64,000 nucleotides of DNA, taken from positions 310,001-374,000 of IMG/VR virus record IMGVR_UViG_3300032770_000001. One strand, 5' to 3'. The notes under the pieces were generated by a model, which searched no databases, was not told the origin of the DNA, and was given only the letters and a program-made list of their open reading frames with translations. The position numbers and the translations under genes were made by a program. This document shows, piece after piece, positions 32,438 to 53,731 of the stretch. The stretch's first letter is position 1; every line of letters starts with the position of its first letter.

Positions 32438-35400
32438 CTACGAAGATTTTTCGCTTGACAAAAATTCCGCTGAAGTCTTGGTATCTTCATCCCACTCAGG
32501 TTCCCACTTCTCGTACTTTATGAAAATGTGAACGCCTATCGTCTTCACACCCGCCTTCAAAGCAGCGAGCCAGCGGTGGTGCCCGTCCCGTATTTGGTAC
32601 TTGCCGTCCTTTTCAGGCCAAACTGCAATCGCCTTGAACTTGCTTCCGCCCTGTTTCATACGTCTCGCAAAGCGATTGACTTTCTCCGCGTAATGAGTCT
32701 GACCCTGACGTGACATCTGCTCCCCGCCTTCGATCTTCTCAATCGGAACCAACGTAACGTTCGGATCGTAATGGAAGTCCCGGTCATCATTGATGTCCGG
32801 ATCGGGCACCCATGTCACTTCGGGTGCTTTACCCGCAACCTTGGTACGCTTCAGAATCTTGATCTGCTGCGGAGAGAACACGCAGTAGCTCTTACCGCCG
32901 AACTCCGGACTGTTGCCTTCGTCGAGAATCGCGCCATCATACTTCAGGAACCGCAGGGCGTCCATCACGGGCTTGGAATCGATCAGCTTCCACTCCATGC
33001 CGGGATCGGTGACCTCTAGCATGTCGATGTTGATGCCCATCTCTTTCCAGTCCTGTTCGTTTAACTGACCCTCGGTGTACGCACGCAGGGCTTCAAGCAA
33101 TGTACGGGTAGCGTGCTCCGGAGGCGTGGTGCCCATCGGAAGCGGCTGAACATCGACATCCTCATCAATCCAGTTTGGGTTGGTGAAGTCCACCGGGTTG
33201 TTCATGGTGATCTGACAGGTCAGAACGTACTTGTCTCGTTTGTTGCCCGGATTTCCGGCACGGTTCTCAGCCCAATTGACGGCGGTCTGATAGTCCGGCG
33301 TGAAGAAGTAGGCATTGCTGCCGACCGTGACCTCAGCCAATCCCCAGAGTGTGCGCTTCCCAGTTGTAGGTGCGAACTCATTGAAGACGTGCGGAGTGCC
33401 GTGATACATAGTCATTGTCTTGGCAGTCTTTACGGAGCCCTCTTTATAATCTCTCTGCAACCGACGCTGTAGCTCCTGCTTGTGGTACTTGTTGGCGGTG
33501 TAGGGGCTGATCTCAGGCTCAACGATGCCCTTCACTTTGACCTGATTGGGTTTGAACACGATGTAGTCATCGTTGCCGAGAGTCTCATGATGGAGTTCAA
33601 TGACATTCTTGATAATCACCCCATCGTAGCCCCTTTCGTGGGCGAATGAGACGATGCTATCCGTATCGACCTCGTCTCCGTTGAACCAACCCTTCATTGC
33701 TTTTGGCGTCGGAATGGAATAATACCCGTTGTTTTTGGCGTCCACAACGAACGGCTTGTTGATCGTCAGATAGCATTCGTACACGAACGAACCGTATGCT
33801 TGCGCTACCAGTGGATCGGTGCAGAAAAATTTTCCCACCCGGTACTTGGGATCGTTGTGGATGTTATCTGACCACTTGTAGGTGCCGTGGTAAACAGGGC
33901 CGTACTGCTTCGCAACCTTGCCATGCGTGGGATCGAGTTTCAACTGCACACGATAAAGTCCACCATGAACTTTGTCGAGCAACACGGAGTGACCGCGTGA
34001 TTCCCACCACCGTTTGTACTTCAAAGCATCGCTCTTGTTCAGGAGTCCCTCGTCCGACCATCGCTGTTTCTTCGCAGCGGTATGTTCAGTCGGATGCCCC
34101 CAAACCTTCATCATCAGGTGTCCACCCGCAACCATGTCAATGTCTTCGAAATCGTTGTTTTCATACCACTGAATCAGGTTGAACCCCTTAGCTTGCTCCT
34201 CAGCAGTGTCGGCTACCAATAAGCAAAGTTTGGCTCCCCGCGACTCGGCCTCATCGAGAAATTTGTAAAGCAGATCATTTCCGTGTCCCTGACCCCGTGC
34301 GCTATCGTACACGTTGATATTGTTCAGGACAGCGAAATAATCGTATTGCCGTATGTCAGCGACTAACTCTTCGTTCGTGTAATTGAAACGGTCGAGCCAA
34401 TTTTGTAGTTGCTCAGCCGTCGTACTGGCAACGTATCCTTCAGCGGTGCCGAAATCCGTACTTACAACAATCTCCCGCACACCCGCCGCTGTCTTAGATG
34501 CCGTCTTGTTAAACTCATCCAGATCGAGAACCACAACCGCAGGAATGGACTTGGCTCCTAGAATCTTCAGAGCATCGTAGCGATGCGAACCTTCCACGAT
34601 GAACGGACCACCGGGGTCAACGCCAACGATCAGGGGCATCAATTCACCCGACTGTTTGATCTCTTCCGCCAGTTGTTTGGTACGCGGCGTCACATCGGGC
34701 GGCATATCGAACTCATCGAACGGCACTTCCCGGATGCCGTCGAGGATCAGGTAGTTCGGGAAAGTCGCGGCGATGGAACTCATGTTGTCCACCTGATCGA
34801 GAACCGTGCGACCATCTACAACCTGACCTGCCTCCGGGTATTTGACGTTGAACTGAGCTTCCAGATCGTCTTCACTGGAGCCCGTCGTCTCGGATGATCC
34901 CTTCCCGAACGGACGATTCTTCTGCTGCCACAATCCGAACCCAGCAGGGCTCCGGTCGCTGTGGGGGACGACATAATGTCCGACCACTTCCTCGGCGTAC
35001 ATATACATCGCCGTAGCCAAACCTTGACGCCGATACTCAGGTTCGACTTCGGTGTTCGCGGACTGGAGCTTATTGTTTCGCAGAACAAAATCAACGGAAC
35101 CTGCGTACTTTCCCTGCGCGGTCAGCCCTTTCTGAGTCGTATCAAAGGCGCGAACGGTGACTAAATTCCAATTGTTCTCATCGATTTCCAGATCAGGATC
35201 GGTTGGATCGCCATATTCATGGTAGCCGTACTCCAGTTCAAGTTTGAAGTTTTTGTACATGCCGCTACCGTAATCAACATCAACAGGTCCGGCTCCGGTC
35301 TTCTCACCGTCTTCCCAGCCACGCAGATCGATCAGGTACGCCTTAATCATCTGCCCCAGTTCTTTGGCGGCTGCGGTACGGTGATTGCCGTCGAACACAA

Positions 35401-38400
35401 ACAACCCCTCATCGGTATCGATGAATAGGGGGTGAGCCAGATGTTCCTCACTGGCATTCGCCTTCGGCTCGTTGATAAGCTCCGGGTTCTGAAGGAAGTA
35501 ATCGTAATCCGCAGTCACCAGTACGGATTGATCGGTCTTCACGATACTCGGATCGAACTCGTCCAATGGGGCATTGGCAATGTCCTGCTTGCGCTGCTCC
35601 CACGGCTTGCGAGCCCACTCGTCGATCACCAATGGACGTTCGCCGACATAGTCTAGCGTGGTCGGCATCTTGTCGTCGCCTTCCGGCGAAGATGCTCTTT
35701 TGGAATAGGTACGCTGACCACTTAGATTGTAGTTTTGTTTGTAGTCAGCATCGTTGATGTTACCGATTCGTATTTCGCGGACGATATCGTCTAAAGGCGC
35801 GGGTGTGCTTCCGTAGGGCTCGTAATCTTCAAATTGATCCGATGTGGCATCGATATAAGTGTTGTCGATAATTACCCAGCTATGTGGAATACCATTACTG
35901 TACCCATAAGCGATGGATGGACTGTATCCTGCATTTTCCAAGGCATCATAAACAGCGTCGGAAACTGGTTCACAATCTCCATTTTGAGCACGGCGACTAC
36001 CTATCACGCTTTCACGAGCATCCAAAACAATTTCTCGAATATCGGATAGGGACGCCTGTTTCTTTTGCCCGCCTGCGTGCTTTTCGATGATGTCCTTGGA
36101 GTTCTTAAACAGGGCGATGAGGCCGGGGTGGAAACTGCCGGAATCCTCTTCCATCATCTTGTTGATCTCATCCAGCGTGAACCACTCCAGTCCAGTGGTC
36201 TCCCAGTGGTGCTCACTCTGCGGGTGGAAGCTAAACTCGGTGCCCACCAGCCCAATGAAATTGTGGTAGCTGAAGCTGCCGGAACTGAACACGTAAGCCG
36301 GGATCATTGTGACGCCGCCGCCGTATCCCGTTTCCTCTTTCAGTTCGGCCTTGGCCGACTGCGCCAAACCCATACCCTCTTTGACTGCCCCGCCAATAGT
36401 GCCCCAACAGTCGCCGATGTGCACGTCCGGTGAACGCCACGCGAAACAGATACGCTTGGTGGTTGTGCAGATCGGCAGAACGCCTGATGCGGCGTTGCCC
36501 TCTCCAGCCCAAAAGCCCTCATCGTTAAAACCCTCGGCGAGCTTAATGCTAAAGTAGGGCAGCTTGTCTCGTTTATCCCGCTTCTTGGTCACGGGATAGC
36601 GTTGCGAGATGCGCTTCCACGCGGCCTTGGCTTCCGGCGTCTGATCGATACTCGAATTGAATTCTTTGTAGCCCCGCTTCTTGGCTTCAACGATAGCCAT
36701 ATCGTAGAGTTTCTGACCCAGACCTGTGCCACGGTAGGCATCCTCAACGTTGATATCGTAGACGTATGGACCTGCGATGACGGCTCCCTCGGTGCCGATG
36801 TCGATAAAACCGACCGGGCCTTCATACTGAGCGAAAGGACGAGGCATACGGTCTGGTGCCCATGCTCTAATCGTCCAACCACCGTACTCGTTATCGTTTT
36901 CTTCTGTTTCAAAGGTCAGTTTGGAGACATCGCCCTTCGGCACTTCCGATCCGGTCTTCGGGGTCGAGCCCAGCACGATGTAGTAGAGACCCCAGTCGTC
37001 GTCGAAATCGGTCTGGTAACGCTTCTTCAGTTTCTCCCAAACACTTGCCGCTTGCGGACTGTGGTCAATACCCTCATACAGGCGCTCATAACCAAGCTCG
37101 GCAGCTTTTGCAATCCCGGCCTGATAAATTCGCAGGCCGATACCTTGACCCTGAAGGTGTTGAGCGACAGAAGCGGCATCTACCATCAAGCTGTTCTTTG
37201 GAGCACGGGGATTGCCGGGTGCGTCTTCCATCAGTTGGAGGAACACAACACCAACACGTTGTCCCCCCAGTTTCGCGTAGGCTTCCACCCCTTTCGGAAT
37301 TTCCTCGGCGATAACCTCAACCCCATCGGCCAACGCAGCCGTCTTGACGCGACCGACAATACTACACGTGCGGAACGCCCGATCATTCACTTTATCCAAT
37401 TCGAATTTATCGACCTTGAATTGGTACCCACGCCCTAACACGATTTCCTTCTGATAGCCGCCGATGTCCAGATGCCCGGTGCCCTTTGGGACGTTGATGA
37501 TTAACACATCATACTTTTTAAGTCCGATATGCTTCGCAAGCTGATCGAGCCATGCTGGATCACCGTCTAGTGTGCAAGATACAAACCCACGATCAATGAA
37601 ACGGCTACCTTCGTTTGCCATCACAGCATTATCAGGAACAATGCGGTAGACTGTGGTAGCTTCAGGCAGAGGGTTGCTCTCAATGGCTTCATCCAAATCT
37701 AATACGGTCTGCCGATCATTCGTATCGAGATCGTCGTCCTTACGTTTACGTAGCGCCTCGTTGGTATCAACGAACATAACACCTGTGGAATAGTCTTTCT
37801 TCAGCCTATCCACATCATCCTTCACAGCGGAAGTCTTCGTCTGCTCAAGGTACGCCTTAGCTTCATCCGGACGATTCTGAAGACGCCACTTTGCACTGCG
37901 GAGATACGCCTTCTGTGTGCGTTCCGGCAGTTGCTCCCACGATGTTGCTTCGCCGCCACTCAACCAGTCTATGCTTGGAGAACCGAATAGAATCTTCGCC
38001 AGAGCCTCAACAACCTTGGGATCGTTCGGATCGTACTCTTTTGCCGGGGCTGCGGAAGCTTGAGTGGTTTCTTCCTGTCCGGCAACGGGTTTACCCTTGG
38101 CGTCAAGGAAGACAACGTCACGGTCGTAAACGTTGTAATCGGTGCCGCCTTTCTGCCACTTTACTTCAAGCAGACGAGTCGCACCACCGTAATATTGCTG
38201 ACCCACGTCCGGTGCCAAGTTGCGAATCTGCCGGATCACGCCTTTCATGCCATCGGCTTTACGCTGAACCTTAGAACCGATGTCACCCGGCTTCGTCATC
38301 GAAGGATCAACTTCATAGACGCGGGAAGGATCGAATACCACGATCTGATCGCCGTCGAGCAATTTGTGCAAGCCCTTACCCTTGAACCATACGGCATCAT

Positions 38401-41400
38401 ATTTCGACTTCAGGTTTTCGGTCAGCTTCTTGGTCGCCGCGACACGATCCTTCTTCGCCAGTTCAGGATCGTAACCTTGACTGATCCACCATTTCATCAT
38501 GGTCTTCGGGGCACCGAAATTGATGGTCTCCAGACGCGGCACATCGAGATAGTACATCTTCATTCCGCGAGTGGTGCCGCCTGCGAACGTCTTTGCGATA
38601 GACTTGACAGTCGTGAAATAGACGCCATAACCCAGATGGTGAACAGGTGCCGGAATGCCTTCGTGGTACGCCTGATTCTGATAACCGTGCTGGATGTCGC
38701 CGGAGCCTTCTTCGCCCTCGTAGACCACAAAACCCTGATCGCCAATAGCTTCGCGGCGGTCTTCGGTGGTGCCATGATACACCGGGCCGAATAGTTTGCG
38801 GTCGATAGCATCCTGCTGGCTGATGCGATTCATCTTCGCCATCTTGTCAAACACCACACTTGGAATCATCTTCTGAGCCGTAGCCTCTTTGTGTGACAGC
38901 TTAAAGCTCGCAGTCTGCGGTTGCTGTTCAGGCTGAACCTGTTCGACCTCGGTGGGCTCTACGGGCTCTTCCTTCTCCTCAGGCTTGACATACGTATTTG
39001 CGGGCTGTTGCTCACCCGGCTTGAGCCACATGATTTTGTACCCCATGCGCTCATCCCATTGCTTTTTGAAATCCTCAGGCACAGTGCCGTAGTGCACAAC
39101 GATGGGCATCATGCTGCCCTTTTCCTCACGGAAGGCTTCCGGGTCGTTGTAGTAGAACATGAGGTCGCGACCCTCGCGAATCTCCATCACGCATGTGATC
39201 TTGTTGCTGCCGCTATAACCAATGGGCTGCATCGAGCGAGCGTTCTGGAATGACCAGCCGCCTTTCTGCTGAATACGGAGCATGGAACGCAGGGTGCGAG
39301 TCAACTGCTCGGCGGCATTACGAAACACCGCTTCTCCCTGTTCGGTCGTCGGGATCACCGTATCTTTCGGTGGAACCTCAACATCATCGCCCATAACGCG
39401 GCGATAGGTGCGGGTGTAGTCGTAGTTACGGGCGTCGTACCCGTCCTTTTCGATTCGCTTTTGGTCAGACTTGAATGCGTGAGATGTGCGGCGAGTAATA
39501 GACGCCGTGAACACGCCCGGTAGAAGTTCACGAACACGTTTCTCAAGGTTTGCGTCCATCGTTAACTGCGACTCTTCGAGCCGACGCTTGATGGTCGCGA
39601 CGACGCGATCCACATACCGCTGTTGAGAATCAGCGTAAGCCTGCTTCATCGAGTCGGGCGCATTGGGCAGGGTCATCATGAAATGCTCGCCGATCAGGAA
39701 CTCAGAATCATTACCGTGCTCAAACGGAGCATCCAACCACGAAACGATGCTGTCCTCGTCGAGGAATAACGAGTTCGGCTGTCCTTCAACAACCACCATC
39801 ACCATACGATAATCGCCTGCGCTTCTGTTATGGCGAGGAGCGCCGAGAGCCGTCATCAGGTTGCGAGTCAAATAGATTCCGCCGTATGCCTGACGGCTGG
39901 GGCTCGTCATCCCGGCACTGGGATCATCCGCCCACTCTTTGCTCTTACCTTCGGGAACCAAACCTTCGCTCAAAATCGGGCGCAGGTTCTTGATGTCGGT
40001 GCCGTGGTAGTAAATCTGACGGTCAGCGGATTGTTTCTCACGTGGGGACGGAGAGATGTAATTGATGAATGTGTGCATCTCCATCAAAGCGTTCTCTTGG
40101 AACCGAAGCACTGACTGAATCGTGTGTTGTTCGCCGCCGAACTCGTTTTTATAGTCAGCGTACCACTCCTCAGCTTTCGTCAGATTTTCGGCTGCACTCG
40201 TCAACCGCTCCTGCAACATGTTCACATCTTTGCGCTTGGAGGTCTTGAGATACTGCTGGCAGTGGTTAAGCAATGTGAGTAGACGGGGCTGCTGCATCTC
40301 CACAACCGACTCGGCGACCGCAGGTTCGTTTGTGCGGAAGCGAGATGGGTGATGCAGGATAGTATCGTGCTCTGCAAGCAAGGAAGCATAACTCGTAACT
40401 GATCCACGTGGAGCAAATCCGTACCCCGGCTTCCAATCGACCTTGCGGTTTTTCGACGGACCTTTGCGATGAATGATCTTGATCTGCTGCTTGATAAGCG
40501 GTGCCAGACCTTCTGGCAGGCCGAACATGTTGCGCACCTGACCCTTATCATCGATCCAGAAAATCGCGTATTGACCTTCTTCGAACTGTCCGCCAGCCCA
40601 CTGGCTATCCAGAATTCGTTCGCTGAAGATATAGCTGTGATGCCAGTCCTTGCCGTCGCATTCGGCGAAGTCGTGGACTTCCTCGATCACGCCGTCCAGA
40701 ACTGAAGCGGCACCCATAACAAACGGCTTGCCTTTCCACGTGGCGTTATCCCCAGTGACGGCAGCCGCAGCCGCGTACTTCTTGAACGCCTTCGGCGTCC
40801 AGTAAATCTTGTAGTACCCGCCGTACTGATCTTTGGGGTCGTTGTTCGGCTCCTCAACCTTGGAGCAAACGCACTCAGCGACGGGCATCGCGTCGAAAGT
40901 AAAATAGACGGTTTCGCCAGCCAGCAAGATCGGGCGTCCCTTGTAAGCGTAGAACCGCTCCTGTGTCTCTGGGACCTCCCGGAAGAACCCCTCGCGGAAA
41001 TCGGACGGAACTTCGATGTACATCGCCTTCTTTAGCAGGCTGCCAGTCTTGGCATAGGGGTCTACAGTGCCCTGTAATTGCACAGCAAGGCCGCTGTACG
41101 TGCGCCATTCTCCCAAGGCGGACTCACGTGTGCCCAGAGCCCCCGGACGCGGCGTAAAGCTCAGAATCGCGATCTGATCGTCCGGCACTTGACCCAATGC
41201 CTCTACGTTCGAACTGAAAAAGAGAGGATTGAGCGGTCCACCCGCGTTCTCGCGAGCCGCGCACCATGTTTTGTAAAAGTCGAAGGATCGCTCCCGAAGT
41301 TCGGCTTCGGACATCGGCACCTTCCAGTACGACCAGCGGCGATTCCCCTCCGCATCCGTCCAACCATCACCCACGGGTTCGGCATTCGGCATCTCTTCCT

Positions 41401-43417: not shown

Positions 43418-43436
43418 CTTGAGTCCCTACAAAGGT

Positions 43437-46400
43437 TTAGGAAGGCTTCTTTTCGACTTTTTCCTGTTCAACAAAGTCCGGGCCTTCAGTTGGCTGAGCC
43501 GGAGCGACTTGCACATCCTGCAACTTTTTCTTTTTGTACACCGTATCCCGGTCGATGCCCAACTGCTTGCAGATCGGGCAGCTACGCGAGAGTCCGCCCT
43601 GATTCTTCAACCGCCGTTCGAAAGCACGGGTGACGGGCTTTTCTGGAGGGGCTCCCCAGATTTTGGCGACCGTGAATGTAAGCCCTTTTCCATGAAGAGC
43701 TTCTATCAGTTTTACGCCTGACGTGTTGTTGTAGTGTTCTTGGATGCGCGTTTGCGCGTCTTTAGCCCAGCCGAGATAGTGCCCAGCGTGGAACTTCCCG
43801 GTGGTAGCATCGGGACGGCTGGATGGAACCGTCTGACCCTGTCCGATGAGGAAGTGGAGGAGATACACCTGACCCGGCTCATTCATCTTGGCGGTCTTTG
43901 GCATAGTGTACGATTCTACATCCTTTTCGACTTCATCCAAAGAGTAGCCAATCGGACCGCCTTCCCAGTCCACGTAACCCTCTTCTTCGCTCAGGACGAC
44001 CTCCATATCTGACCATGAGCCTGCTTTGATCGGCTGCCACTGATCGTGCCAGTACATCTCGATCCGGCTCGGCGGAATGACTTCCTTGACCCATGCCTCA
44101 CGGAACTCTTCTTTTTCCTTAAGCTCATGGACGTTGTAAATCTCAGGTTCTCCAGTCTCCATTGCCATCTCTGGTGGAATGGTGACGCGGAGACAAATCG
44201 GAATAGACGCCTTGCCGTAAGCTTCCAGCGTATCGCGGAACACGATCTCGGCGTAGTACATTGCTCCACCGGGAGTCGGTGCGAAGAACGTCTTATCGTA
44301 ACTGAATTGACCCAACGATCCACCCCATTGCGGATTTTGTGATGGCTTGAGCCCGTTCTTGGCGATAGAGTTAATATTCTTGGCAGCCGTTGCGTGATAG
44401 AACACACGAGGCTCATTCGCTACTTTTGCCGTGACCATCTTGACGGGGGGCTCGATCCAGTTGTCGCCCTCGTACTGGATGCCTTCGAGTTCGAACTGCG
44501 TGCCCTCTTTCAATCGAACCTCTTTTTCCTCGTCCCCAGTGGACGGCATCATGTTGGCACTCAGCGTACCTTCCCAATCCACATCATTCTCGGTGATTAC
44601 GGCGTGCAGCGTGACGCTCGGTCCACCAGTACCCCAATGACATTCAGCGGCGTTCTCATCCCACGACCAGTACACGCCGACGCCTTTGTACTGGATCGAT
44701 TGGAGCCCTTGTTGGTATTCTTCCATCGGTGTGCCGGGAAACAGATGTTGTTGCGCCGGAGCCGGATATTCTCTGCCTCTGGTTTTTGAACCGACCTCCG
44801 GAACGGAAATGCAACGGTACACGTCCATCGGGAACACCCAGCGGTTGTAAGAAGCCACTAGCTCGTTGTACTTGTCTTCGTACTCATCTCTGGCACGTCT
44901 AATCATTTCCTGCTCACGCTGCCGCTGGTTTTTGATGTCCAGATCGTACCCGTATTGTTCTTCGAGTTGAACATCATAAGCGCCAAGAAGTCCCTTCATT
45001 CCGCCCTGCCGACGCAGCCACGTATTAAACGGGGCGAAACGTGCAGCCGAGGTTTTGCCCTGTCCGGACAAACGACTCAAAGTACGGCTGCCGCCCTCAA
45101 CAAACCAGCTTGCCAGATCGCTACGCTGATGCACCACGTTCAAAATTTTGTCAATGATCTGAAGCTTCTGTTCCGGCGATTGCGCCTTCTCCAGTTGGTC
45201 AGCCAGACCCCACAGCGGTTTCATGGCGTAATCGCTGATGCGCCAGTTGCCTTTTTCGTCATCGAAGAACGACGGCACCTGCTCCCAGTAGTCTTCCGGC
45301 AACTGAGCATCCAACATGTCCTGCGCATAAGCACGGGGATTTCCCGTCTCATGTCCAGTGAAGAATGTGTTGATTTGAAGTTTGTAGATGTTTTTGGTAA
45401 TCAACCACGCAATGTCATCAAGACCCTTCTCATCACGCACGTGCCCAGTTTTTGCCCAGTCATTCCAAATCTTGATGAGGCGACCAGCGGGGACAAGCTC
45501 CCACTTCATACGGTATTCCTTGTCGCCGAGATGATCGTTGTACTCGTTCAAAATCTGAAACTCAAGGTCGCTGTACAGTTCGGAATCAAACGCAACTTTG
45601 CGGGAGCCCGTCTTGCCGCTGAAATGTTTGATCGCCCAGCTAAGCGCCTTGGCTTCATCCTTGGCACCGAAGCTCTCCAGCTTTTGAACTTCTTCCTGAG
45701 TCTTCTGCTGTGGATACATCTCATCCCAATTCTCGACAATGTATCGAGCGAAGTAGTGCCACGGTTCATGGATCGCAATAAACTGGCTCGGCGGTACGTC
45801 GCCATTCATGATGACGTGGCGATACCCCTTTGCCCACTCATCCAATTCCTCTTGTGTAGGCTCAACATCATGAATCATGCGATTGCTGTTGGGGTCTTGA
45901 CGCCAGCCCTTATCCGGATAGTTGGCACGTTGACTGATCTGATCTGGTTTCGCCCAAAATTCGACGAATATGTTATTGTGCTCAGGCGGATAACTTGACG
46001 CCCAAACACCAGCCGATGGCTGCGGTCTGCCGGAACCGTCATCTCCGCGAGCCTTGGACGCGAGCAATCCCTGCGAGCGGATGCTTGCCAGATTCGCGTA
46101 ACTCTTAGTGTAATGGTACAGGCGAACGGTGCCCGGTGGTATTGGTGCGGTACCCGGCTCAGGTGCAAGCTCGGACTCACTGTTCACAGAAGCATGTTTG
46201 AGGGTGCCTTCATCCATCGGCTCTTCCCACCACAACTGCGTGCGACGAAGCTTGGGGAATGCTTGACCACCGATGCCCTCAAAGCCGTGCTGCGGCACCA
46301 TGTCATACTGATCGGCGTAAGCCAGCTTGGGTTTCTGGAGCCCCTCCTGAATATATCCTTCCTCATCCACCTGTGACATCGGATCGATGTTCGCACTGTA

Positions 46401-47225
46401 GATTGAAACCCAGCTAGAACCGTTCCAAACTTCAATATCATCCGGCATCAACGTGCCGTTATAGTAGAACGCTTCGGAGCCGGAATCATCAGTGCCGATG
46501 TCGTCCAACTTGAGCTTCCAGTCAGCCTGCTCACGCATACGCAGTACGCACGGAATCAAACCCTCTTCACCGGGTTCGTCAGAATTGTGGTAAGCGAACT
46601 CTTCGGCACGCATGACCCAAAACGAGACGCCTTTGGCGTCGGTCAGGAAGACTTTGCCAGCTTTGTGACCAGCGAGTGCCGGACCTCCGATACCGGATTC
46701 CGCACCGGGCGTTAATCCACCGGAGGCGATGCTATCCAGATTCTTCAAGTAGGTGACGTGGTAGATGTACTTGCCGGGGGAGGCGTATTCATAGCCCTGA
46801 TCGTCATAATCAAACGCGAATTTCTCGGTAAGTTGCCGACCAGCCGTGGGGATGTACTCGTATTTCCACATGCCTTCAATCTGCACTTCATTCAGTTTAT
46901 CGTTTGGAACGAAGAAACCGTCTTCCTTGTGCTCAGTGGTCTGTACGGCATCTTCCGGCACCCGCACTTTGATGATTGCCATCTCCGGCTTGCGGTTCTT
47001 GATTTCAGACCACGGCTTGCCGGAATCGGTCAGCTTCTTCCAGAATTTGCCTTCGGCGACCGAAGCATAAGCCTCGGAATACTTCAGATCGTCATAGAAG
47101 TAGATTCCATCACGTCCTTGCGGTGCGTAGTAGTTTCTCCAAAAACCCTGATCGATGGGCTTGAATCCTTCCGCTTTAATCTTCTCCGCAATTTCGACGG
47201 ACGTGACGTGGTAGAGGGTCAACAT
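43437..47225 (-). CDS. polyvalent protein (1262 aa): ~5 ART-like modules, an unknown module and a C-terminal GIY-YIG-like nuclease
   Basis: LYHVT, IYHVT, LYHYT, VYRC, FYHAT ART starts; 'VYLLHF..HYLGW..RIQEH..ERRLK..CPIC'. Confidence 0.8.
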   Translation of the reverse strand: MLTLYHVTSVEIAEKIKAEGFKPIDQGFWRNYYAPQGRDGIYFYDDLKYSEAYASVAEGKFWKKLTDSGKPWSEIKNRKPEMAIIKVRVPEDAVQTTEHKEDGFFVPNDKLNEVQIEGMWKYEYIPTAGRQLTEKFAFDYDDQGYEYASPGKYIYHVTYLKNLDSIASGGLTPGAESGIGGPALAGHKAGKVFLTDAKGVSFWVMRAEEFAYHNSDEPGEEGLIPCVLRMREQADWKLKLDDIGTDDSGSEAFYYNGTLMPDDIEVWNGSSWVSIYSANIDPMSQVDEEGYIQEGLQKPKLAYADQYDMVPQHGFEGIGGQAFPKLRRTQLWWEEPMDEGTLKHASVNSESELAPEPGTAPIPPGTVRLYHYTKSYANLASIRSQGLLASKARGDDGSGRPQPSAGVWASSYPPEHNNIFVEFWAKPDQISQRANYPDKGWRQDPNSNRMIHDVEPTQEELDEWAKGYRHVIMNGDVPPSQFIAIHEPWHYFARYIVENWDEMYPQQKTQEEVQKLESFGAKDEAKALSWAIKHFSGKTGSRKVAFDSELYSDLEFQILNEYNDHLGDKEYRMKWELVPAGRLIKIWNDWAKTGHVRDEKGLDDIAWLITKNIYKLQINTFFTGHETGNPRAYAQDMLDAQLPEDYWEQVPSFFDDEKGNWRISDYAMKPLWGLADQLEKAQSPEQKLQIIDKILNVVHQRSDLASWFVEGGSRTLSRLSGQGKTSAARFAPFNTWLRRQGGMKGLLGAYDVQLEEQYGYDLDIKNQRQREQEMIRRARDEYEDKYNELVASYNRWVFPMDVYRCISVPEVGSKTRGREYPAPAQQHLFPGTPMEEYQQGLQSIQYKGVGVYWSWDENAAECHWGTGGPSVTLHAVITENDVDWEGTLSANMMPSTGDEEKEVRLKEGTQFELEGIQYEGDNWIEPPVKMVTAKVANEPRVFYHATAAKNINSIAKNGLKPSQNPQWGGSLGQFSYDKTFFAPTPGGAMYYAEIVFRDTLEAYGKASIPICLRVTIPPEMAMETGEPEIYNVHELKEKEEFREAWVKEVIPPSRIEMYWHDQWQPIKAGSWSDMEVVLSEEEGYVDWEGGPIGYSLDEVEKDVESYTMPKTAKMNEPGQVYLLHFLIGQGQTVPSSRPDATTGKFHAGHYLGWAKDAQTRIQEHYNNTSGVKLIEALHGKGLTFTVAKIWGAPPEKPVTRAFERRLKNQGGLSRSCPICKQLGIDRDTVYKKKKLQDVQVAPAQPTEGPDFVEQEKVEKKPS

Positions 47226-50200
47226 TACTCAAACTCCTCCGGGATCAACGTTTCAAGTGCAGGCAATCCCTCGACACCATGCGTGCGCTCCGGGATGTTG
47301 GCGTAGCCATTGTTCTCCAGACCTTCACCGTAATCCCCGCTGTCGTAACGAGTGTCACTCAGAGGCGGCGTTTTATGGGACGAAGATTTGTCAAACGTCA
47401 TCAGGAACGGCCCTTGCTTCAACTTTTCCAAATCAGAGCCAACCAGCGTGCCGAGGTATTCCAAGTCTTCCGGCTTGCACAAGAAGTTGGTGTACTGCTG
47501 CCACGAGTGTTGAACCGCTTCTTCCTTCGTGTAAGAAAGATTAGTCACCTTGGATGGTTCCGACATCAACCGTTCCCAGCCTTTGATAACGTTCTCCACC
47601 TGTTCCTGATGGTGGGAACCTTGGAAGTTTTTAATGCGAGCCACGACCACGGCAGGCTCGCCAGAGATGCGGCTGTTCTTTACGTCACGAGTTGACCACT
47701 TGCCAGTGACGTATGCCTCGATCTGAGCCGCGACCTCACCACCTTGTCCGGCAAAACGGGTCGCAACCTCACCCGCAGGGGTGGTGCTGACCAAGTGGTG
47801 TTCCATCGAATAGCTACGCTCCAGCGACTCCAACGCCTTTTGACGCTTGCGTGGAATCTGATCGATAGTCTTGCCATACTTCGACAGAACCTCGTTGAGA
47901 ATCTCTATGAACTCCAGACCACGGAAGCCATCCTTGGCAATGATCCGGGCGATATCCACCGTGGTGCCGTGATAGACGATCCCCGCACGCCAGTCCTGCT
48001 TAAGCTGCTCCCATGCGTCTGCTGCGGCAGTTTTCTTCGAATTGACTCTACGCAAACTGAGTTGTTCCGGGGTCAGGTCTGGGATGGTCTGCGCCCACGT
48101 AGAGCCGTGGAATGTACCTAGTGGAACCCATGCCTCATAAAGCACGAGCCCACGAGCTTTCAATCCCCGGTCGCGTCCGGCTTGCTGCATTGCCGTGGCA
48201 CCATCCTGCGCCAAGAATGAGCCTTTGCGTAATCCTTCGCGGTCGATGATAGCGGCGGTCGCGGACGGTGTCGCGTGATACAGGCGGACGCGGTTGTTCT
48301 CGATGGGAAGTTTGTTGCGTTCTGCCCAATCACGATTCTTCTCTTCCTGCGTCCACTCCGCGTAGGGTTTGCTGTTTGCTTTCTTGTTCCAAGGATAGTT
48401 CGCCATGTAGTATGCGTATTCTTTCGTGGCAGCTTCTTCCTTTTGTTCACGGGTGAATGGCGCTTTTACTGGGTAGTTCGGGTCTTTCCACACCGCTTCC
48501 GGGATAACAATGGAGTGGTCTTCAGTAATCGGCAGCATTCCGATTCTTGAAAGGTCTGGGTCGTATCCTACAAACTTTTTTGGGTAATGCGTGACGTGAG
48601 CGTGCCCCTTCGAACCGTCCTGCATCTTCCCTTCTGTATCCCACAGCCGCACTTCGACGCTGAAGTTGTTCACGTCGGAGTCAGGCGTCACCTGAATCGT
48701 GACGGTGTCTTTGTAGAACAGCATCTTGCCGTTCTTGAACTCTTTCACCTTGTCCCACATTGCGCCTGCGATCTTGCTGCCGACTTTCTGGATGAAACTA
48801 CCATCCGGAACCACAGCGGAGATCGAGCCCTCATCTTCGCTCACATTCTTGTAGTAGACACCGCGACGAGCCTGACCACGGGTGATTTGACCTCGCATGA
48901 TGCTGTTGGCTTTGAAGTCCTGTCTCGGATCGTTGGGGGTGTTCACCATATCGCCCACAATCTTCACCGGAAAGATGTCCGGCTTCATTGTCGGAGCGAC
49001 CTGAGTACCATCGGAAAACTTTGCTTTATTCGCCCAATCGCCGGGATAGAAATCCTCATCCGGTAGGGGTGTACCCTGTCCCCCTGCGCTATAGCCAGTC
49101 GGGAAAATTCCGTGCTTAGCCAGAGACTTCTTGCCCATGAGTAAAGTCTTGCCGTACTCTCGCGTGCCGTCCCATTCACCCTGTGCCGGGTATCCGATAC
49201 GGGCCGTCAATGCATCCTTTGCGGCTTGGAATGTACCGATGTGCAGCCCATACGCCGCACCACGCAACTCGCCGGATGGCGAACCGTGGTAGTAGGTGGT
49301 GTTATCGACGAACTTCGCCCCAGTCTTTCCTTTCGGTGCGCCCTTGCTGGCTTCGGCAATCCACGCTTCCTGTCCGGCATCGATCATCGCTTTTAGCATA
49401 TTCAAAGTGCTGCGAGCACCATCGAAGTCCCAATTTCCCAACGAAACGGCGGCGTCACGAGCGAGAGTCTGTGGGCGGTTATAAACGCGAAGCGCAGCAT
49501 GAGCTTCAGCATACCGTTTGCTCACTGCCTTAAAATCAGCGATGGCCTCATCCAATGTCTTACCCTTGAGTTTGCCATCTTTCTGCACTCCATAGTTGCC
49601 ACGCATGTTACCTTGCATCTCACGTTCGAAGCCATACGCATTTTCGAGTACACGCAGAACTTTCTCGGTCTTCTCTTTCACGCTGCCGTAACCAAATGAG
49701 CCGTTGATGATGGCGACCCGCTCATTCATGCGGTGGGTGAGATCGCCACAGTGCTCCACCACGAAGCTGTATACTCCGGCTCCGAGTGGGTGGTGTTGGA
49801 TGCGGAGCATGGCGTGCTCCGGGGCCCCACGTTGTTCGTCTGCCAACTCGATAAATGCGGCATACTCTTTCACACGAGCCTCACGCATTTCAGTGTAAGT
49901 CTGGAAGTGTTGCTTCTCTTCAGGATCAGTGATTTCAGCACCGACCTTAGAGATGTCAGCGTTCGGAGCTTCAGCCCAGAGTTTAGCCAGTTTCTCTTCC
50001 ACGTCCTTACTGCGTGCCAAGTTCCAGCCGTTGAATTGTCCGATTTTCGCTTTGCCACGACCGAAGTCGGGATCGTCAGTCTGCACCAGACGATATTCAC
50101 CGCCCTCCCAATTGAGTTTGCTCAGATAATCCATCGCTTGACGACTGAGGTTAAACGCATACTGCCAGCCAAGGCGGACACCGCGAGGGCCGTACTTGAA

Positions 50201-51694
50201 TTCGTTGATGAGAACGTAAACGTTACGTCTCGGCTGAACGATCTCGTTCTTGTCGATCAGCATCTTCTCGGTCACGAAGTTGGCACCATACTTTGCGTTG
50301 AAACGACGGGCAATTGCACGCCATCCCGAACCGTGACCATAGCCACGATATTGGAGCATCTTGTAGGCATCGAGACCCATACGCAGCACCTTCGGACGCT
50401 CATTCAGAAGCAGGTCTTCGTGATGTGCAAGTTCGTGTGCAACCACACGAGGCAGGAGTTTGTCATTACCGACCATGTCGCTCTGAATTGAAATTGTAGT
50501 GTTCTCATCAGCGTAGACCTGACCGTTCGCATCCTGCCCATACCGCCAGTGACAGTCACCACCAGTGGGCTCAGCGGCACGATTGACAATCTTGATCGTT
50601 GGACGCGGTAGACCCGGCGATAGCACCGCCATCATCTCGGTGACAACGTTCTGCACTTTGCCATAGGGGTCTTCTTCGGCTGCCAATTTCGGTGACTTGG
50701 AAGCGTGCATTCCCATTGCACGTTCAAGCTGCACGACTTCCTGCGTCTCACTCTTACGAGACAAGGCGACTTCACGCACCATGAAACTGATGCCCTTCAA
50801 GCCGTCGAGACCTTCATATTTTTGCGAGACATCCGGCTTGACATACGCCAACGTGATGTGTGGTTGATAATCCGGGAAGTTATCCGGGCGATTGCCGATT
50901 TCGGCATCGATCTTTTCTTTGAGTGTTTTGAGTCCGGAACCTACAACCTCGATCACAATCGGGGCGGTACCTTCCGACGCTTCGGACGGAGTGAACACGT
51001 GGAGCTTGCCGAACGTGACTGGAAACGGAGTCACGCCCTGAACCGCACGACGGAGTCCTTCGGCGTCCTCATCCACACCGTACTTAAGTGTGATGTGCGC
51101 CTGCATCTCACGTCCCTTGCCTGCTAAGTCTTCATCTGGAATCAGAGCCTTGCTGAACTGCTCCAGCTTCCCGGCGATATTGTCCGGAACATTGACCTGT
51201 GTCGATGCGTTGGAATACGCAGCGAACTTCGGTGTGCGGAACGTCTTCGCCTGCGACATGGGCACCATCACCGATACGCGGGGGTAGCCCATGTCGCGAA
51301 GCACAGCAAAGCGGTGCCGACCATTGGTAAAGCTTACGCCGCCACGGTCATCGTAATCGTTATAGGAAATCAGCGGGGCTTCAATCGGAGTGCCGGGGTT
51401 GTCCTTGAGCCATTTCTGGAACCGCTCGTAACGTCCGTGGATGGCATTCTCGGTGCCGCCCGGTCCGACGTAGAATCCGGGCGGATCGCTTGCCTTCCAC
51501 TCCGCATCAAGTTTTGCGGTATCAACGTTGACTAGGACGTAGTCTTTACTGCCCCGCATGTGGGACGGGCGGGTGAACTTAATTGGCGGCAGGTCAGCGG
51601 GATTTCCGCTTGGCTTTGAGGGCTGCGATGGCGTAGCGTGATTTTCTTCCGGCGTATCTGACGCGGCGGTGATTTTTTGCAGAAGTGGATTCAT
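47225..51694 (-). CDS. polyvalent protein (~1489 aa): ParB-like, 2H phosphoesterase, SprT-like metalloprotease, 3 ART-like and unknown modules
   Basis: 'FTNGRHR'; HITL x2; 'HELAHH..GHG..W'; YYHGS, LYHAT, VYHGT; start chosen at MNPLLQKITA. Confidence 0.8.
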   Translation of the reverse strand: MNPLLQKITAASDTPEENHATPSQPSKPSGNPADLPPIKFTRPSHMRGSKDYVLVNVDTAKLDAEWKASDPPGFYVGPGGTENAIHGRYERFQKWLKDNPGTPIEAPLISYNDYDDRGGVSFTNGRHRFAVLRDMGYPRVSVMVPMSQAKTFRTPKFAAYSNASTQVNVPDNIAGKLEQFSKALIPDEDLAGKGREMQAHITLKYGVDEDAEGLRRAVQGVTPFPVTFGKLHVFTPSEASEGTAPIVIEVVGSGLKTLKEKIDAEIGNRPDNFPDYQPHITLAYVKPDVSQKYEGLDGLKGISFMVREVALSRKSETQEVVQLERAMGMHASKSPKLAAEEDPYGKVQNVVTEMMAVLSPGLPRPTIKIVNRAAEPTGGDCHWRYGQDANGQVYADENTTISIQSDMVGNDKLLPRVVAHELAHHEDLLLNERPKVLRMGLDAYKMLQYRGYGHGSGWRAIARRFNAKYGANFVTEKMLIDKNEIVQPRRNVYVLINEFKYGPRGVRLGWQYAFNLSRQAMDYLSKLNWEGGEYRLVQTDDPDFGRGKAKIGQFNGWNLARSKDVEEKLAKLWAEAPNADISKVGAEITDPEEKQHFQTYTEMREARVKEYAAFIELADEQRGAPEHAMLRIQHHPLGAGVYSFVVEHCGDLTHRMNERVAIINGSFGYGSVKEKTEKVLRVLENAYGFEREMQGNMRGNYGVQKDGKLKGKTLDEAIADFKAVSKRYAEAHAALRVYNRPQTLARDAAVSLGNWDFDGARSTLNMLKAMIDAGQEAWIAEASKGAPKGKTGAKFVDNTTYYHGSPSGELRGAAYGLHIGTFQAAKDALTARIGYPAQGEWDGTREYGKTLLMGKKSLAKHGIFPTGYSAGGQGTPLPDEDFYPGDWANKAKFSDGTQVAPTMKPDIFPVKIVGDMVNTPNDPRQDFKANSIMRGQITRGQARRGVYYKNVSEDEGSISAVVPDGSFIQKVGSKIAGAMWDKVKEFKNGKMLFYKDTVTIQVTPDSDVNNFSVEVRLWDTEGKMQDGSKGHAHVTHYPKKFVGYDPDLSRIGMLPITEDHSIVIPEAVWKDPNYPVKAPFTREQKEEAATKEYAYYMANYPWNKKANSKPYAEWTQEEKNRDWAERNKLPIENNRVRLYHATPSATAAIIDREGLRKGSFLAQDGATAMQQAGRDRGLKARGLVLYEAWVPLGTFHGSTWAQTIPDLTPEQLSLRRVNSKKTAAADAWEQLKQDWRAGIVYHGTTVDIARIIAKDGFRGLEFIEILNEVLSKYGKTIDQIPRKRQKALESLERSYSMEHHLVSTTPAGEVATRFAGQGGEVAAQIEAYVTGKWSTRDVKNSRISGEPAVVVARIKNFQGSHHQEQVENVIKGWERLMSEPSKVTNLSYTKEEAVQHSWQQYTNFLCKPEDLEYLGTLVGSDLEKLKQGPFLMTFDKSSSHKTPPLSDTRYDSGDYGEGLENNGYANIPERTHGVEGLPALETLIPEEFE

Positions 51695-52159: not shown

Positions 52160-53731
52160 TTACTTTTTGAGAGCTTCGACTTTGAGTTCCTGCGCTCGCT
52201 GATAAACCTTCGAGCGTACATCTGATGGAAGAACCGCTAAAGTATTGTACGGCTTTCCCGGCACGATCTCATCCATCGCCTGATGGACATACCCCATATC
52301 GCCTGTCGGTTGGTCCGGGAATTTGTAGCCTGCTCGCTCCCACATCTCACGGTAGTTATCGGCTTTCTTGGCGATAGCGCGAACTGCCTTGAAGAAGGGC
52401 TGAGACGAAGCGTACACGGGAACCCCACCAATGTCGAGCGGCGGTTTCCCCTGCATCACCGGATCAGCGATAGCTTCGGCTGCGCACTTGACATCGTCCA
52501 ATGTCAGTGAAGCTACCTTACCTGCGGAACGGTCTTTCAAATTATCGGCAAGGGCGGCGGCGATCTCGAAGCGGAGGTCCTCGGAGGTACGTCCCTCAAT
52601 GGCTTCCTGCAACTTCTCAAGCTGCTGCTCACCTGCCTGTACGATTTGGTTCAGGTCGTTGAGCAACTTCAACTCTTGGGGAGTAAGTTTGCCCTTTTCG
52701 GGCTTGTAGAGGAGATCATGCGTGACCTCAGCCCATGCGTGCATCAGCACGGAGGCGACTTGAATTTCAACCTGCGTGTCGGCATAACGAAGTTCTTTTT
52801 TGCGGAGAGTTTCAGGACGCAACCGGACGAGGTAGTGGGTTGCAACGTAACCCAGCGTATCGCCCTCTTCTGGTTGACTCGATTCAGGAAAGTGTTTGGG
52901 CTCCCGCACCGAGACGAACAATTGATTGATAATCGTCCCGACGTGGTCGCGGTCGGCAGGCATGTATAAAGCCACGCGACATCCGGCGAGATCGACGATG
53001 TCATCGTAAATTTCGCGGAAGCTCTGGTAGTGCTTTTTCTTATCCCGCTTGAACAGCTTCTTTTCAAGACGAGACGGACGCTTGGCACGCGAGGAAACGA
53101 CGGCTTTGATGCCTGCCTCCTGTAATGCCTGATCGAGCTTGTCCTGCACGAGGCTAGCGCACTCCTGATAGAAGTCAACCTCGTGCTCATAGTTCTTCAA
53201 AAATGCTTCGATCACCGTGTATTTACGATCCGCATTCTGATCGGCGGTTTTGCGGGACTTAGGGTTTTGTAACAGTTCCGCAACAATCGAGGAAGTTTTC
53301 TGCTCATCCTGTTCTTCCTGATGCTCTTTCACGATGTCGAACAGGTAGTCAAACTTGACCTCGGAGATATCCCCCAGATACTTTTCCGGTACATGCTCCA
53401 GATAGGTCTTTTCCGCCTCTTCGAGAGTGTCGAAACCGAGCAGAATTTTGTACTCGTCAAACTCGCCGGAATCATCGATTTGTTCGACAATATAGGCATA
53501 TTCGGCATCTTTGTCCGGACCGATATAGATATCAACTTTCTCCTGATCGCCAACTCCAGTGGTGTCCGGGATGTAGCCGTAATCTGCTTTCATCTCAGTT
53601 TTGAAGGTCTTACCTTCAGGCGTGGTGCCGACGCGGGTGCTTCCTGCGGGCCATTCAATGATGACCGGAAGTCCTTGAAATTCAGTGCTGTGCTCCTGCG
53701 GGAGCTTGTCGGCTGTGATCGATTTCATCAA
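52160..53731 (-). CDS. inorganic pyrophosphatase-like - RelA/SpoT synthetase fusion (polyvalent protein)
   Basis: 'IEWPAGSTR..DYGYI..GD..VDIYIG..FDEYKILLGF'; 'SRAK..DLAGCRV..GYVATHY..EIQV...HAWAEVTHDLLYK'. Confidence 0.85.
   Translation of the reverse strand: MMKSITADKLPQEHSTEFQGLPVIIEWPAGSTRVGTTPEGKTFKTEMKADYGYIPDTTGVGDQEKVDIYIGPDKDAEYAYIVEQIDDSGEFDEYKILLGFDTLEEAEKTYLEHVPEKYLGDISEVKFDYLFDIVKEHQEEQDEQKTSSIVAELLQNPKSRKTADQNADRKYTVIEAFLKNYEHEVDFYQECASLVQDKLDQALQEAGIKAVVSSRAKRPSRLEKKLFKRDKKKHYQSFREIYDDIVDLAGCRVALYMPADRDHVGTIINQLFVSVREPKHFPESSQPEEGDTLGYVATHYLVRLRPETLRKKELRYADTQVEIQVASVLMHAWAEVTHDLLYKPEKGKLTPQELKLLNDLNQIVQAGEQQLEKLQEAIEGRTSEDLRFEIAAALADNLKDRSAGKVASLTLDDVKCAAEAIADPVMQGKPPLDIGGVPVYASSQPFFKAVRAIAKKADNYREMWERAGYKFPDQPTGDMGYVHQAMDEIVPGKPYNTLAVLPSDVRSKVYQRAQELKVEALKK

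Follow-up and report, generated by a model that had tools for sequence, protein, structure and literature searches.

A K-x-A-(A/S) motif at the module junctions of giant polyvalent proteins suggests processing by the head maturation protease in Tunturi-5-like soil phages

The stretch analysed here, referred to as the window, comprises 64,000 nucleotides (positions 310,001-374,000) of IMGVR_UViG_3300032770_000001, a 455,708 bp contig of a soil "huge phage" in IMG/VR; all gene and motif coordinates are given in window numbering. Its minus strand carries a cluster of genes, in the order D, E, C, B, A, which together encode ~7,000 residues arranged as ~40 small modules joined by short linkers, and a short motif of the type K-x-A recurs at the junctions between these modules (Table 1). 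An earlier sequence-only reading of this DNA had described four minus-strand open reading frames (ORFs). All four are as it described them (ORF C with 1489 residues from Met30), but the cluster has five genes, as the 465 bases between D and C, which had been taken as empty, encode the JAB metallopeptidase ORF E.

By their domain content, ORFs A-D belong to the polyvalent proteins as defined by Iyer et al. 2017 (PMC5512222), that is, unrelated enzyme domains are found together with signature domains of that family, namely the ADP-ribosyltransferase (ART) domain ART-PolyVal (PF18760) and InPase, an inorganic pyrophosphatase domain (PF18823), as well as a weakly matching SprT-like zincin. That they are encoded by a phage is evident from the major head protein, head protease and tail genes of the contig and from a cultured relative. 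Eleven ART-type starts of the form [hydrophobic]-Y-H-[GVA]-[TS], plus one exotoxin-type ART, make a total of ~12 ART-like modules, and three or four GNAT modules were recognised by Pfam; NCBIfam searches of the polyvalent pieces added almost nothing beyond Pfam. The SprT-like module has an intact HExxH signature (HELAHH) and is kept in most relatives. ORF E, which could act in processing or, as a deconjugase, against host defences, is also kept between D and C in L007 and L009-L018, and its 3' end overlaps the Met30 start of ORF C by ~100 nt. Here and below, L-numbers denote related loci from IMG/VR and P-numbers giant homologues.

No GenBank phage matched the flank of the cluster (megablast) or ORF B (tblastn), and the relatives were taken from IMG/VR. 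ORF A and a neighbouring ClpX-like gene recur with 100% identity in a second metagenome sample (L014, IMGVR_UViG_3300032954_000001, 105 kb), so the ORF structure is no assembly accident of one sample. Orthologues of ORF D with 59-64% identity are present in L002, L006, L007, and L008.

Because the relatives carry the same modules in differing orders, the ends of BLAST high-scoring segment pairs (HSPs) mark module boundaries, and junctions could be defined independently of the motif by the module shuffling among the IMG/VR relatives and 23 giant homologues. HSP ends within 10 residues of an ORF end were excluded from the breakpoint counts. The sequence-only reading had placed K-x-[AGS] at almost every junction. 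All the motifs that it listed are present, each within a few bases of the position it gave. For 33 of these 42 sites an HSP breakpoint is no more than 8 residues away, compared with 13.5±2.8 for random positions (maximum 22 in 500 trials); the sites without such support mostly have no homologues in the set or are within 10 residues of an ORF end. The agreement is often exact, with 40 of 268 unique HSP starts sitting on the K of K-x-[AGS] where ~4 would be expected, and x-[AGS] following in 40 of the 51 HSP starts that fall on a K. The motif is thus non-randomly placed, as had been proposed, but K-x-[AGS] is too loose a description of it. This pattern occurs in the cluster ORFs 109 times where composition predicts 105.7, a density of one per 64 residues at which some copy can be picked close to nearly any position. 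Since the total count is at chance, ~70 copies count as background, and nothing can be predicted from the loose motif by itself. The sharper form, which almost every linker has, often as K-T-A/G/S, is K-(T)-A-(A/S).

Table 1. Genes, modules and motif sites of the effector cluster, in gene order (window coordinates; residues are numbered within each ORF)
Feature	Residue(s)	Position	Strand	Evidence or remark
ORF D, first gene of cluster: InPase + RelA/SpoT-like polyvalent protein	523 aa	52160..53731	-	
InPase module	D 14-129	53345..53692	-	Pfam PF18823, E 1e-32
Candidate junction KTSS	D145	53288..53299	-	in linker between HSP end 134 and HSP start 166
Junction KTA(D)	D161	53243..53251	-	HSP starts 166, 167
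RelA_SpoT nucleotidyltransferase module	D 214-345	52697..53092	-	Pfam PF04607, E 7e-11
Candidate junction KVA(S)	D405	52511..52519	-	no breakpoint within 8 residues; HSP ends 422-430
ORF E, Prok-JAB/MPN+ metallopeptidase, between D and C	up to 183 aa	51594..52145	-	Pfam PF14464, E 5.8e-7, 29.8 bits vs cut-off 25
ORF C	1489 aa from Met30	47225..51694	-	longest ORF to 51781, 1518 aa
Leader MNPLLQ then KITAA; candidate capsid-targeting peptide + cleavage site	C, N-terminal	51662..51694	-	
Junction KFAA	C185	51218..51229	-	10 HSP starts 182-191
2H phosphoesterase (LigT / 2'-5' RNA ligase / Acb1-like)	C 199-344	50750..51187	-	Pfam PF13563, E 6e-11; Acb1 match weak
Junction KLAA, between 2H and SprT-like modules	C365	50678..50689	-	13 HSP ends 361-367
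SprT-like zincin metallopeptidase, HELAHH	C 389-498	50288..50617	-	Pfam PF10263, E 2.6e-4, under curated cut-off
Junction KVG	C612	49940..49948	-	10 HSP ends 604-616
Junction KTG(A), 11 residues ahead of YYHGS	C819	49319..49327	-	HSP ends 821, 822
Candidate junction KIA	C1003	48767..48775	-	no homologues in set
Candidate junction KKA	C1133	48377..48385	-	no homologues in set
Candidate junction KTAAA, 19 residues ahead of VYHGT	C1250	48020..48034	-	strong motif; no HSP breakpoint in set
Junction KSS, absent from sequence-only reading	C1465	47381..47389	-	HSP starts 1465, 1466 in five relatives
ORF B	1262 aa	43437..47225	-	start overlaps ORF C stop (TAATG, 47223-47227)
ART-like module (LYHVT)	B from 4	47136..47225	-	ART-start strand pattern
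Junction KFA	B135	46815..46823	-	HSP ends 136, 137
Tpt1/KptA-like ART core	B 142-175	46701..46802	-	weak Pfam + NCBIfam matches; IYHVT at 154
Junction KLA	B300	46320..46328	-	HSP ends 294, 304
Junction KHA(S)	B343	46191..46199	-	HSP starts 343, 349
Junction KTG(S)	B538	45606..45614	-	HSP start exactly K538
Junction KVA	B543	45591..45599	-	HSP end 545, start 547
Junction KTS(A)	B724	45048..45056	-	15 HSP ends 718-731
Junction VTAKVA, 6 residues ahead of FYHAT	B931-936	44418..44435	-	HSP ends 933-943
Tpt1/PARP-like ART core	B 934-976	44298..44426	-	Pfam PF01885, E 3.6e-5
Junction KTA	B1110	43890..43898	-	HSP starts 1110, 1117
ORF A, ~22 modules	3659 aa	32438..43417	-	
KQA	A3-5	43403..43411	-	L006, L007: K-N/K-A-A at same junction inside one ORF
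Junction KTG	A297	42521..42529	-	HSP breakpoint 300
Junction ITAA, variant without K	A458	42035..42046	-	13 HSP ends 454-469
Junction KTG	A790	41042..41050	-	HSP start exactly K790
Junction KKA	A796	41024..41032	-	HSP start 796
Junction KYA(A)	A880	40772..40780	-	10 HSP ends 880-888
Junction KQSA, 8 residues ahead of YYHGT	A1128	40025..40036	-	HSP starts 1124-1128
PARP/Tpt1-like ART start	A 1128-1160	39938..40036	-	Pfam; YYHGT at 1136
Junction QTAS, variant without K	A1501	38906..38917	-	HSP start 1505
Junction KMA, absent from sequence-only reading	A1525	38837..38845	-	HSP start exactly K1525
ART-PolyVal-like module (weak)	A 1587-1700	38318..38659	-	Pfam E 0.029; VYHGT at 1546
Junction TQAS, variant	A1785	38054..38065	-	HSP ends 1787, 1796
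Candidate junction KTS(A)	A1861	37829..37837	-	no homologues in set; 23 residues ahead of ADPrib_exo_Tox domain
ADPrib_exo_Tox ART module	A 1884-2012	37382..37768	-	Pfam PF03496, E 9e-10
Junction KTA(A)	A2025	37337..37345	-	HSP start 2023; ART domain end 2012
Junction KTG(S)	A2154	36950..36958	-	HSP ends 2152-2161
GNAT acetyltransferase module	A 2172-2269	36611..36904	-	Pfam PF00583, E 2e-17
Junction KLA	A2292	36536..36544	-	11 HSP starts 2289-2295
NUDIX module	A 2310-2429	36131..36490	-	Pfam PF00293, E 4e-7; 57% identity to Tunturi 5 gp273
Junction KQA(S)	A2453	36053..36061	-	11 HSP ends 2446-2457
Junction KRA(S)	A2573	35693..35701	-	HSP start exactly K2573
Junction KTG(A)	A2706	35294..35302	-	HSP start exactly K2706, HSP end 2703
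GNAT-like module	A 2768-2811	34985..35116	-	Pfam PF14542
Junction KGS	A2839	34895..34903	-	HSP ends 2838, 2842
ParB_N-like module	A 2914-2965	34523..34678	-	Pfam PF02195, E 2e-8
Tandem junction KTAS-KTAA	A2971-2978	34484..34507	-	HSP starts 2974-2978
Junction HTAA, variant	A3112	34073..34084	-	HSP ends 3109-3120
Junction KVA, 8 residues ahead of VYHGT	A3167	33911..33919	-	10 HSP starts 3162-3172
ART-PolyVal module	A 3175-3294	33536..33895	-	Pfam PF18760, E 3.5e-26
Junction KTA, 7 residues ahead of MYHGT	A3330	33422..33430	-	10 HSP ends 3323-3341
Junction KVA	A3526	32834..32842	-	HSP end 3530
Second ParB_N-like module (weak)	A 3554-3629	32531..32758	-	Pfam E 1.2e-3
KTS(A), 13 residues from C-terminus of A	A3647	32471..32479	-	A ends KSS-stop

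In junction windows, K.[AGS] is enriched 3.0-fold in the window ORFs (P 2e-6) and 2.6-fold in the relatives (P 4e-16), KT[AGS] 6.1-fold in the window ORFs, and the strong form K-x-A-(A/S), here also written K.A[AS], 9.8-fold in the window ORFs and 8.7-fold in the relatives. Counted over entire proteins, KT[AGS] is found 19 times in the cluster ORFs, against 5.45 expected (P 5e-6), while in the 54 other ORFs of the window both KT[AGS] (8 vs 7.8) and K.A[AS] (6 vs 6.0) are at expectation. The boundary enrichment implied by the sequence-only reading is present. None was observed in junction windows for the reversed and substituted controls [AGS].K, R/E/D/Q/P.[AGS], K.[DE], and K.[LIV]. In an unbiased scan of 1,200 residue-pair patterns (gaps 0-2) in 23 proteins, K.A ranked top (4.6-fold, P 3e-74), followed by KT, TA, and AA, and only four positions of the junction logo are informative, namely K, T (27%), A (64%; G 24%, S 12%), and A (32%) or S (15%). 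Breakpoints coincide with 20 of the 28 strong-motif sites. KT[AGS] was rejected as the sole motif because it is strong in the window, L002, and L006 but weak in L007, L008, and L013, K-x-A-(A/S) being more general. The signal was confirmed to be at the protein level: codon choice at the motif is that of the ORFs as a whole (24 AAG, 13 AAA, and each of the four Ala codons in use), which rules out a signal in the DNA. An origin of the motif from former start codons (M-K-...) was also ruled out, since Met is not enriched at position -1.

The breaks between the giant ORFs fall at this motif as well. The stop of ORF C lies where relatives run on, in the same ORF, with K-T-G or K-E-A and a further module, and the end of B and the start of A (M-E-K-Q-A) coincide with a K-N/K-A-A that L006 and L007 carry within a single ORF. 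The gap between B and A is 19 nt (43417-43439), and relatives encode the corresponding parts in a single ORF that reaches up to 5,480 residues; the splits are therefore recent, and they sit exactly at motif junctions. ORFs A and B end directly after K-S-S and K-P-S, respectively, and these ends are the sole clue to a cut after the third residue of the motif.

At the N-terminus of ORF C the motif follows a short leader, MNPLLQ. The start MNPLLQ-K-x-A-(A/S) is common to the first giant ORF of several phages, with differing modules behind it, so the motif also stands where no upstream domain exists to be linked. In all, MNPLLQ or MNPLFQ with K-x-A opens ORF C, P0002, P0003, P0004, P0006, L009, and a 948-residue ORF in the head module of the window's contig, described below. 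A short N-terminal leader that unrelated head-internal proteins share, with the protease site directly behind it, is what characterises the capsid targeting sequence of T4, and this likeness suggests a candidate targeting function for MNPLLQ.

A cultured relative, Tunturi 5 (PP885688, 308.7 kb), was found by tblastn with part of ORF C. It is a jumbo phage whose host is Tunturiibacter, a member of the Acidobacteriota (PMC11924767). Its polyvalent homologue gp321 is encoded in the virion module and has K-A-A-A or K-S-A-A junctions ahead of ART strands; the polyvalent genes adjoin portal, connector, and head genes, and in other relatives they adjoin portal, connector, and protease genes. The motif is present in the major head protein (K-S-A-A at residue 19, K-L-A-A at residue 26), in the head maturation protease (residues 33 and 265 of 287), six times in the acidic, scaffold-like gp332, and ten times, against 1.7 expected, in the "DNA ejection protein" gp328. 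Ranked by motif excess, the top five of the 363 Tunturi 5 ORFs are gp328, the DarB-like gp350 (305039-308281; 9 motifs vs 1.6), the hypothetical gp348 (302926-304518; 8 vs 1.7), the scaffold-like gp332, and the virion protein gp345; gp350 and gp348 are predicted to be head-packaged substrates of the protease. By class, K.A[AS] occurs 25 times vs 5.1 expected in head and ejection proteins (4.9-fold, z 7.7) and 30 times vs 8.0 in polyvalent-like proteins (3.7-fold, z 7.4), whereas the 19 tail, baseplate, and fibre proteins show no excess (9 vs 7.2, z 0.8). These z values are from shuffles within 20-residue blocks, which keep local composition. Order-permuted motifs were near null in the Tunturi 5 classes. 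The most distant giant homologues, P0021-P0024, have no excess of K-x-A-(A/S) or KT[AGS], and the motif appears specific to the Tunturi-5-like clade, as would be expected if it co-evolves with one protease family.

With the Tunturi 5 major head protein as query, at least 80 loci were found, including L045, which lies on the window's own contig at 420,643-441,563, ~72 kb from the polyvalent cluster. The major head protein of L045 (70% identity to that of Tunturi 5; PHROG E 7e-42) has K-T-A at residue 19 and K-L-A-A at residue 26, and its head maturation protease (L045 4952-5848, 298 residues; phrog_18299, E 2e-15; 59% identity to Tunturi 5 gp331) has the motif at residues 33, 39, and 270, that is, at both ends. 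For K.A[AS], the scaffold-like protein holds 7 copies vs 2.7 expected and the ejection homologue 7 vs 1.7; the five head proteins together hold 20 vs 5.4 (z 6.2 against local shuffles), compared with 2 vs 1.3 in the 22 other ORFs. The motif is therefore present in capsid and scaffold proteins elsewhere in the genome, where the sequence-only reading had suggested looking for it, and the same excess in the head set was seen in ten related genomes. Pfam added almost nothing on the head-module proteins. Directly upstream of the protease gene lies the Cys-rich, mosaic 948-residue ORF mentioned above (L045 2078-4924), without Pfam or PHROG match, which starts with MNPLFQ-KRA, so that a leader is common to a head-module protein and the polyvalent ORF C. 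Its counterpart in L032 has modules in common with polyvalent proteins and 8 motifs vs 1.05 expected.

Among 28 distinct protease homologues, the motif is found at most 35 residues before the invariant core in 26 and within the last 50 residues in 25. Both sites are near-invariant, with indels and variable sequence on either side. An AlphaFold model places them in segments with a low predicted local distance difference test score (pLDDT), 28-44 and 223-298, which flank a better-predicted core. This layout resembles that of prohead proteases which trim themselves, as in SPN3US gp245 (PMC10052503). By tblastn, the protease matched the annotated head maturation proteases of phages Motura and pEa_SNUABM_1, and against BFVD the moderate model matched phage G gp19 (E 5e-6) and a "prohead serine protease" (E 2.7e-3), its best fold matches being uncharacterised jumbo-phage proteins.

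In this genome and its relatives, the motif sits at independently defined junctions and is restricted to head, ejection, and polyvalent proteins. On this basis, K-x-A-(A/S) is probably the site of the phage's own head maturation protease, and the polyvalent proteins its packaged, cut, and ejected substrates. This lends support to the inference of the sequence-only reading that the giant proteins are polyproteins, although the motif proposed there was too loose; from the sequences we infer cleavage, a scissile bond, a targeting role of the leader, packaging, and ejection. In the proposed mechanism, the giant precursors would be made late and enter the prohead, the first of them by means of the six-residue MNPLLQ leader and its motif, which are found on a head-module protein too. 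There the protease would cut them at exposed junction motifs, probably as K-x-A | A/S, and would likewise cut the scaffold-like protein, the N-terminus of the major head protein, and its own two ends. The freed enzymes of 5-40 kDa could then leave with the DNA and modify host proteins, RNA, and nucleotide signals. The full proposal, that in a widespread clade of Tunturi-5-like soil jumbo and huge phages, whose major head protein recurs on more than 80 contigs, a head protease of undescribed K-x-A | (A/S) specificity both matures the capsid and dices multi-thousand-residue polyvalent precursors into dozens of enzymes inside the head, with one MNPLLQ leader loading the whole arsenal in fixed stoichiometry, seems to us slightly more plausible than its negation.

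Several observations weigh against these interpretations. The MNPLLQ leader is absent from Tunturi 5, and in the window it is present only on ORF C, B and A being without an evident targeting signal. The cluster is outside the head module here, its neighbours being an exonuclease, a ClpX-like ATPase, and tail-fibre-like genes. Eight of the 28 strong-motif sites are away from known breakpoints, and the ~70 K-x-[AGS] copies within modules would have to be spared, which requires an argument from accessibility. Part of the excess in the scaffold-like protein is in K/A-rich stretches, even though the head set keeps z>6 under block shuffling. The cut after the third residue, K-x-A | A/S, is guessed. 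The protease had no match in Pfam, in a PDB profile search, or with Foldseek against PDB, and the pLDDT of its model is 59; a weak point is its family assignment, for which the evidence is the PHROG match, the remote matches to phage G gp19, Motura, and pEa_SNUABM_1 (PMC12484599), and the moderate model.

Some of the neighbouring genes deserve mention. The gene beside the cluster (30360-31571, +) that bears the PHROG label "ATP-dependent protease" was considered as a Lon protease and rejected as the processing enzyme, as Pfam identifies a ClpX-like AAA+ unfoldase (AAA_2 and ClpB_D2-small) with no peptidase domain. It is found near the cluster with 76-79% identity in L002, L008, and L018, and virions of phage G have been reported to contain ClpX and ClpP (PMC12484599). 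At 19499-28149 (+) there is a run of large ORFs without Pfam match, three of which resemble gp29-gp32 of the Tunturi 5 tail-fibre module, a likeness that places a virion module ~4 kb from the cluster. The N-terminus of a 220-residue ORF (28884-29546, +) resembles the C-terminal domain found in the alpha subunit of bacterial RNA polymerase (PF03118, E 2e-7); this subunit is a target of T4 Alt and Mod, which makes an alpha-like ORF notable beside ARTs. In an ORF at 13667-14713 (+), an RNA ligase (phrog_24030, E 9e-111) is joined to an N-terminus that resembles HNH endonucleases. Promoter, terminator, and tRNA scans gave nothing informative.

Could the cluster process itself? The SprT-like zincin of ORF C, or the JAB ORF E, might cut the junctions before packaging or after ejection, and metallopeptidase (MPTase) domains have been proposed to process polyvalent proteins (Iyer et al. 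2017, PMC5512222). The zincin has its HELAHH intact, and the first giant ORF carries this module close to its N-terminus in L006, L007, L009, L013, P0002, P0003, P0006, and P0011, and the JAB ORF keeps its place between D and C. However, the motif is also found on the head protease and on the major head, scaffold-like, and ejection proteins, which have no reason to be substrates of an effector zincin, and the clusters of L002 and L008 have no SprT-like module, yet the KT[AGS] excess of L002 (14 vs 2.9) is the strongest of the relatives examined. The Pfam match to SprT is, moreover, under the curated cut-off, and JAB enzymes are known as isopeptidases acting after Gly-Gly. Self-processing is for these reasons unlikely. 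Chance, or the composition of linkers, in which K, A, T, S, and G are common, has in its favour that K-x-[AGS] is at expectation overall and that K and A are 1.3-fold enriched in junction windows. Against it, the permuted and substituted controls are flat, and neither the 54 other window ORFs nor the 19 large multidomain tail proteins show an excess. With HSP starts falling on the exact K (40 vs ~4), the residue-pair scan, and block-shuffle z values of 3.0 to 7.7, this explanation is effectively refuted, and its probability is next to nil.

The motif might also be left uncut, as a linker, a structural cap, or a docking element for the capsid, the scaffold, or a chaperone, perhaps the ClpX-like ATPase, with the giant proteins staying whole. 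Giant proteins are indeed packaged uncut elsewhere, such as the N4 virion RNA polymerase (vRNAP) and the 250 kDa P1 DarB (PMC5512222, PMC9024508), and the ClpX-like gene is kept near the cluster; Tunturi 5, however, has the motif and no ClpX-like homologue. In addition, the motif is placed at the classical cleavage sites of prohead proteases (their own termini, the N-terminus of the major head protein, and repeatedly the scaffold-like protein), ORFs stop and start exactly at it, and only four residues contribute to its information, in line with the T4 I/L-x-E and SPN3US A-x-E sites (PMC12991175, PMC10052503), which makes an uncut element quite improbable. It is very improbable, too, that the precursors are cut but unpackaged, in the cytoplasm, by a host protease or by the head protease acting outside proheads. 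The location of the cluster among replication and repair genes, away from the head module, and the lack of a leader on B and A would fit such a scheme, but in relatives the polyvalent genes adjoin those for portal, connector, and protease, the leader is common to ORF C and a head-module ORF, and the excess of the motif in head and ejection but not tail proteins points to a protease that acts only inside the prohead.

Comparative genomics is the only source of what is known about polyvalent proteins. To the question of how a 400-kDa string of unrelated enzymes is packaged, passes the tail, and is activated, a junction motif common to the likely substrates of the head protease offers a testable answer, namely polyproteins cut in the capsid, and it would let the boundaries of the mature enzymes be predicted for hundreds of uncharacterised anti-host modules; Tunturi 5, being cultured, provides an experimental system for polyvalent processing. 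Prohead proteases have also been reported to trigger the cyclic oligonucleotide-based antiphage signalling system (CBASS) by cutting sensor loops (PMC12991175), so protease specificity bears on phage-host conflict as well.

Polyvalent proteins, the processing of injected proteins by head proteases, and capsid-targeting leaders are already known. In the literature searched there was no K-x-A head-protease specificity, polyvalent junction motif, head-protease processing of polyvalent proteins, or phage polyprotein diced into dozens of enzymes. The polyvalent proteins of Iyer et al. 2017 have 2-15 domains each and were predicted to be head-packaged, injected, and possibly processed by embedded peptidases (PMC5512222). 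Those described here are similar in stringing together unrelated effector domains, including ART-PolyVal, InPase, and a zincin, and differ in having ~40 modules in a five-gene cluster, a four-residue junction motif, and a tie to a separate head protease; no junction motif is reported in that paper, nor is the word "linker" used there.

A close parallel for processing is T4 gp21, whose substrates include Alt, the internal proteins, the scaffold gp22, and gp23, and with which the protease described here has no sequence or Pfam link that we could find. In both, a short motif of P3-x-P1 type is found on the major head protein, scaffold, protease, and packaged, injected enzymes, a short N-terminal leader ends at the motif, and an ADP-ribosyltransferase is delivered from the head, although cleavage and delivery are only presumed in the present case. 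T4 cuts after Glu (I/L-x-E; PMC12991175) and not at K-x-A-(A/S), and its substrates are single enzymes losing a propeptide rather than 40-module polyproteins. In the jumbo myoviruses phiKZ, 201phi2-1, and SPN3US, a short motif likewise directs the cutting of many head and ejection proteins, as is presumed here. Their motif is A/S/G-x-E, mostly N-terminal propeptides are removed, ~80% of SPN3US head proteins are uncut, and no dicing of a polyprotein has been described; the SPN3US protease gp245 removes its own 64-residue C-terminal propeptide (PMC10052503). The three myophage head proteases for which a specificity was found in the literature, those of T4 (I/L-x-E), SPN3US (A-x-E), and P1 (E120|S121), all cut after Glu (PMC12991175, PMC10052503, PMC9024508), unlike the specificity proposed here. 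The Dar system of P1 (DarB, DdrB) is similar in that anti-defence enzymes of very large size enter the head by means of an N-terminal signal of <30 residues (PMC9024508). It differs in that DarB is packaged intact at 250 kDa, and in the P1 capsid protein the cut is at E120/S121.

In herpesviruses, assemblin cleaves at (V/L/I)-x-A | S, with Ala at P1 and Ser at P1'. These two positions match the likely K-x-A | A/S, while P3 is Lys here and not aliphatic, and the best fold matches of the phage protease are uncharacterised jumbo-phage proteins, phage G gp19 among them. The release of many enzymes from one precursor is the polyprotein strategy of RNA viruses, and, if our interpretation is true, a true polyprotein expression strategy would exist in a double-stranded DNA phage.

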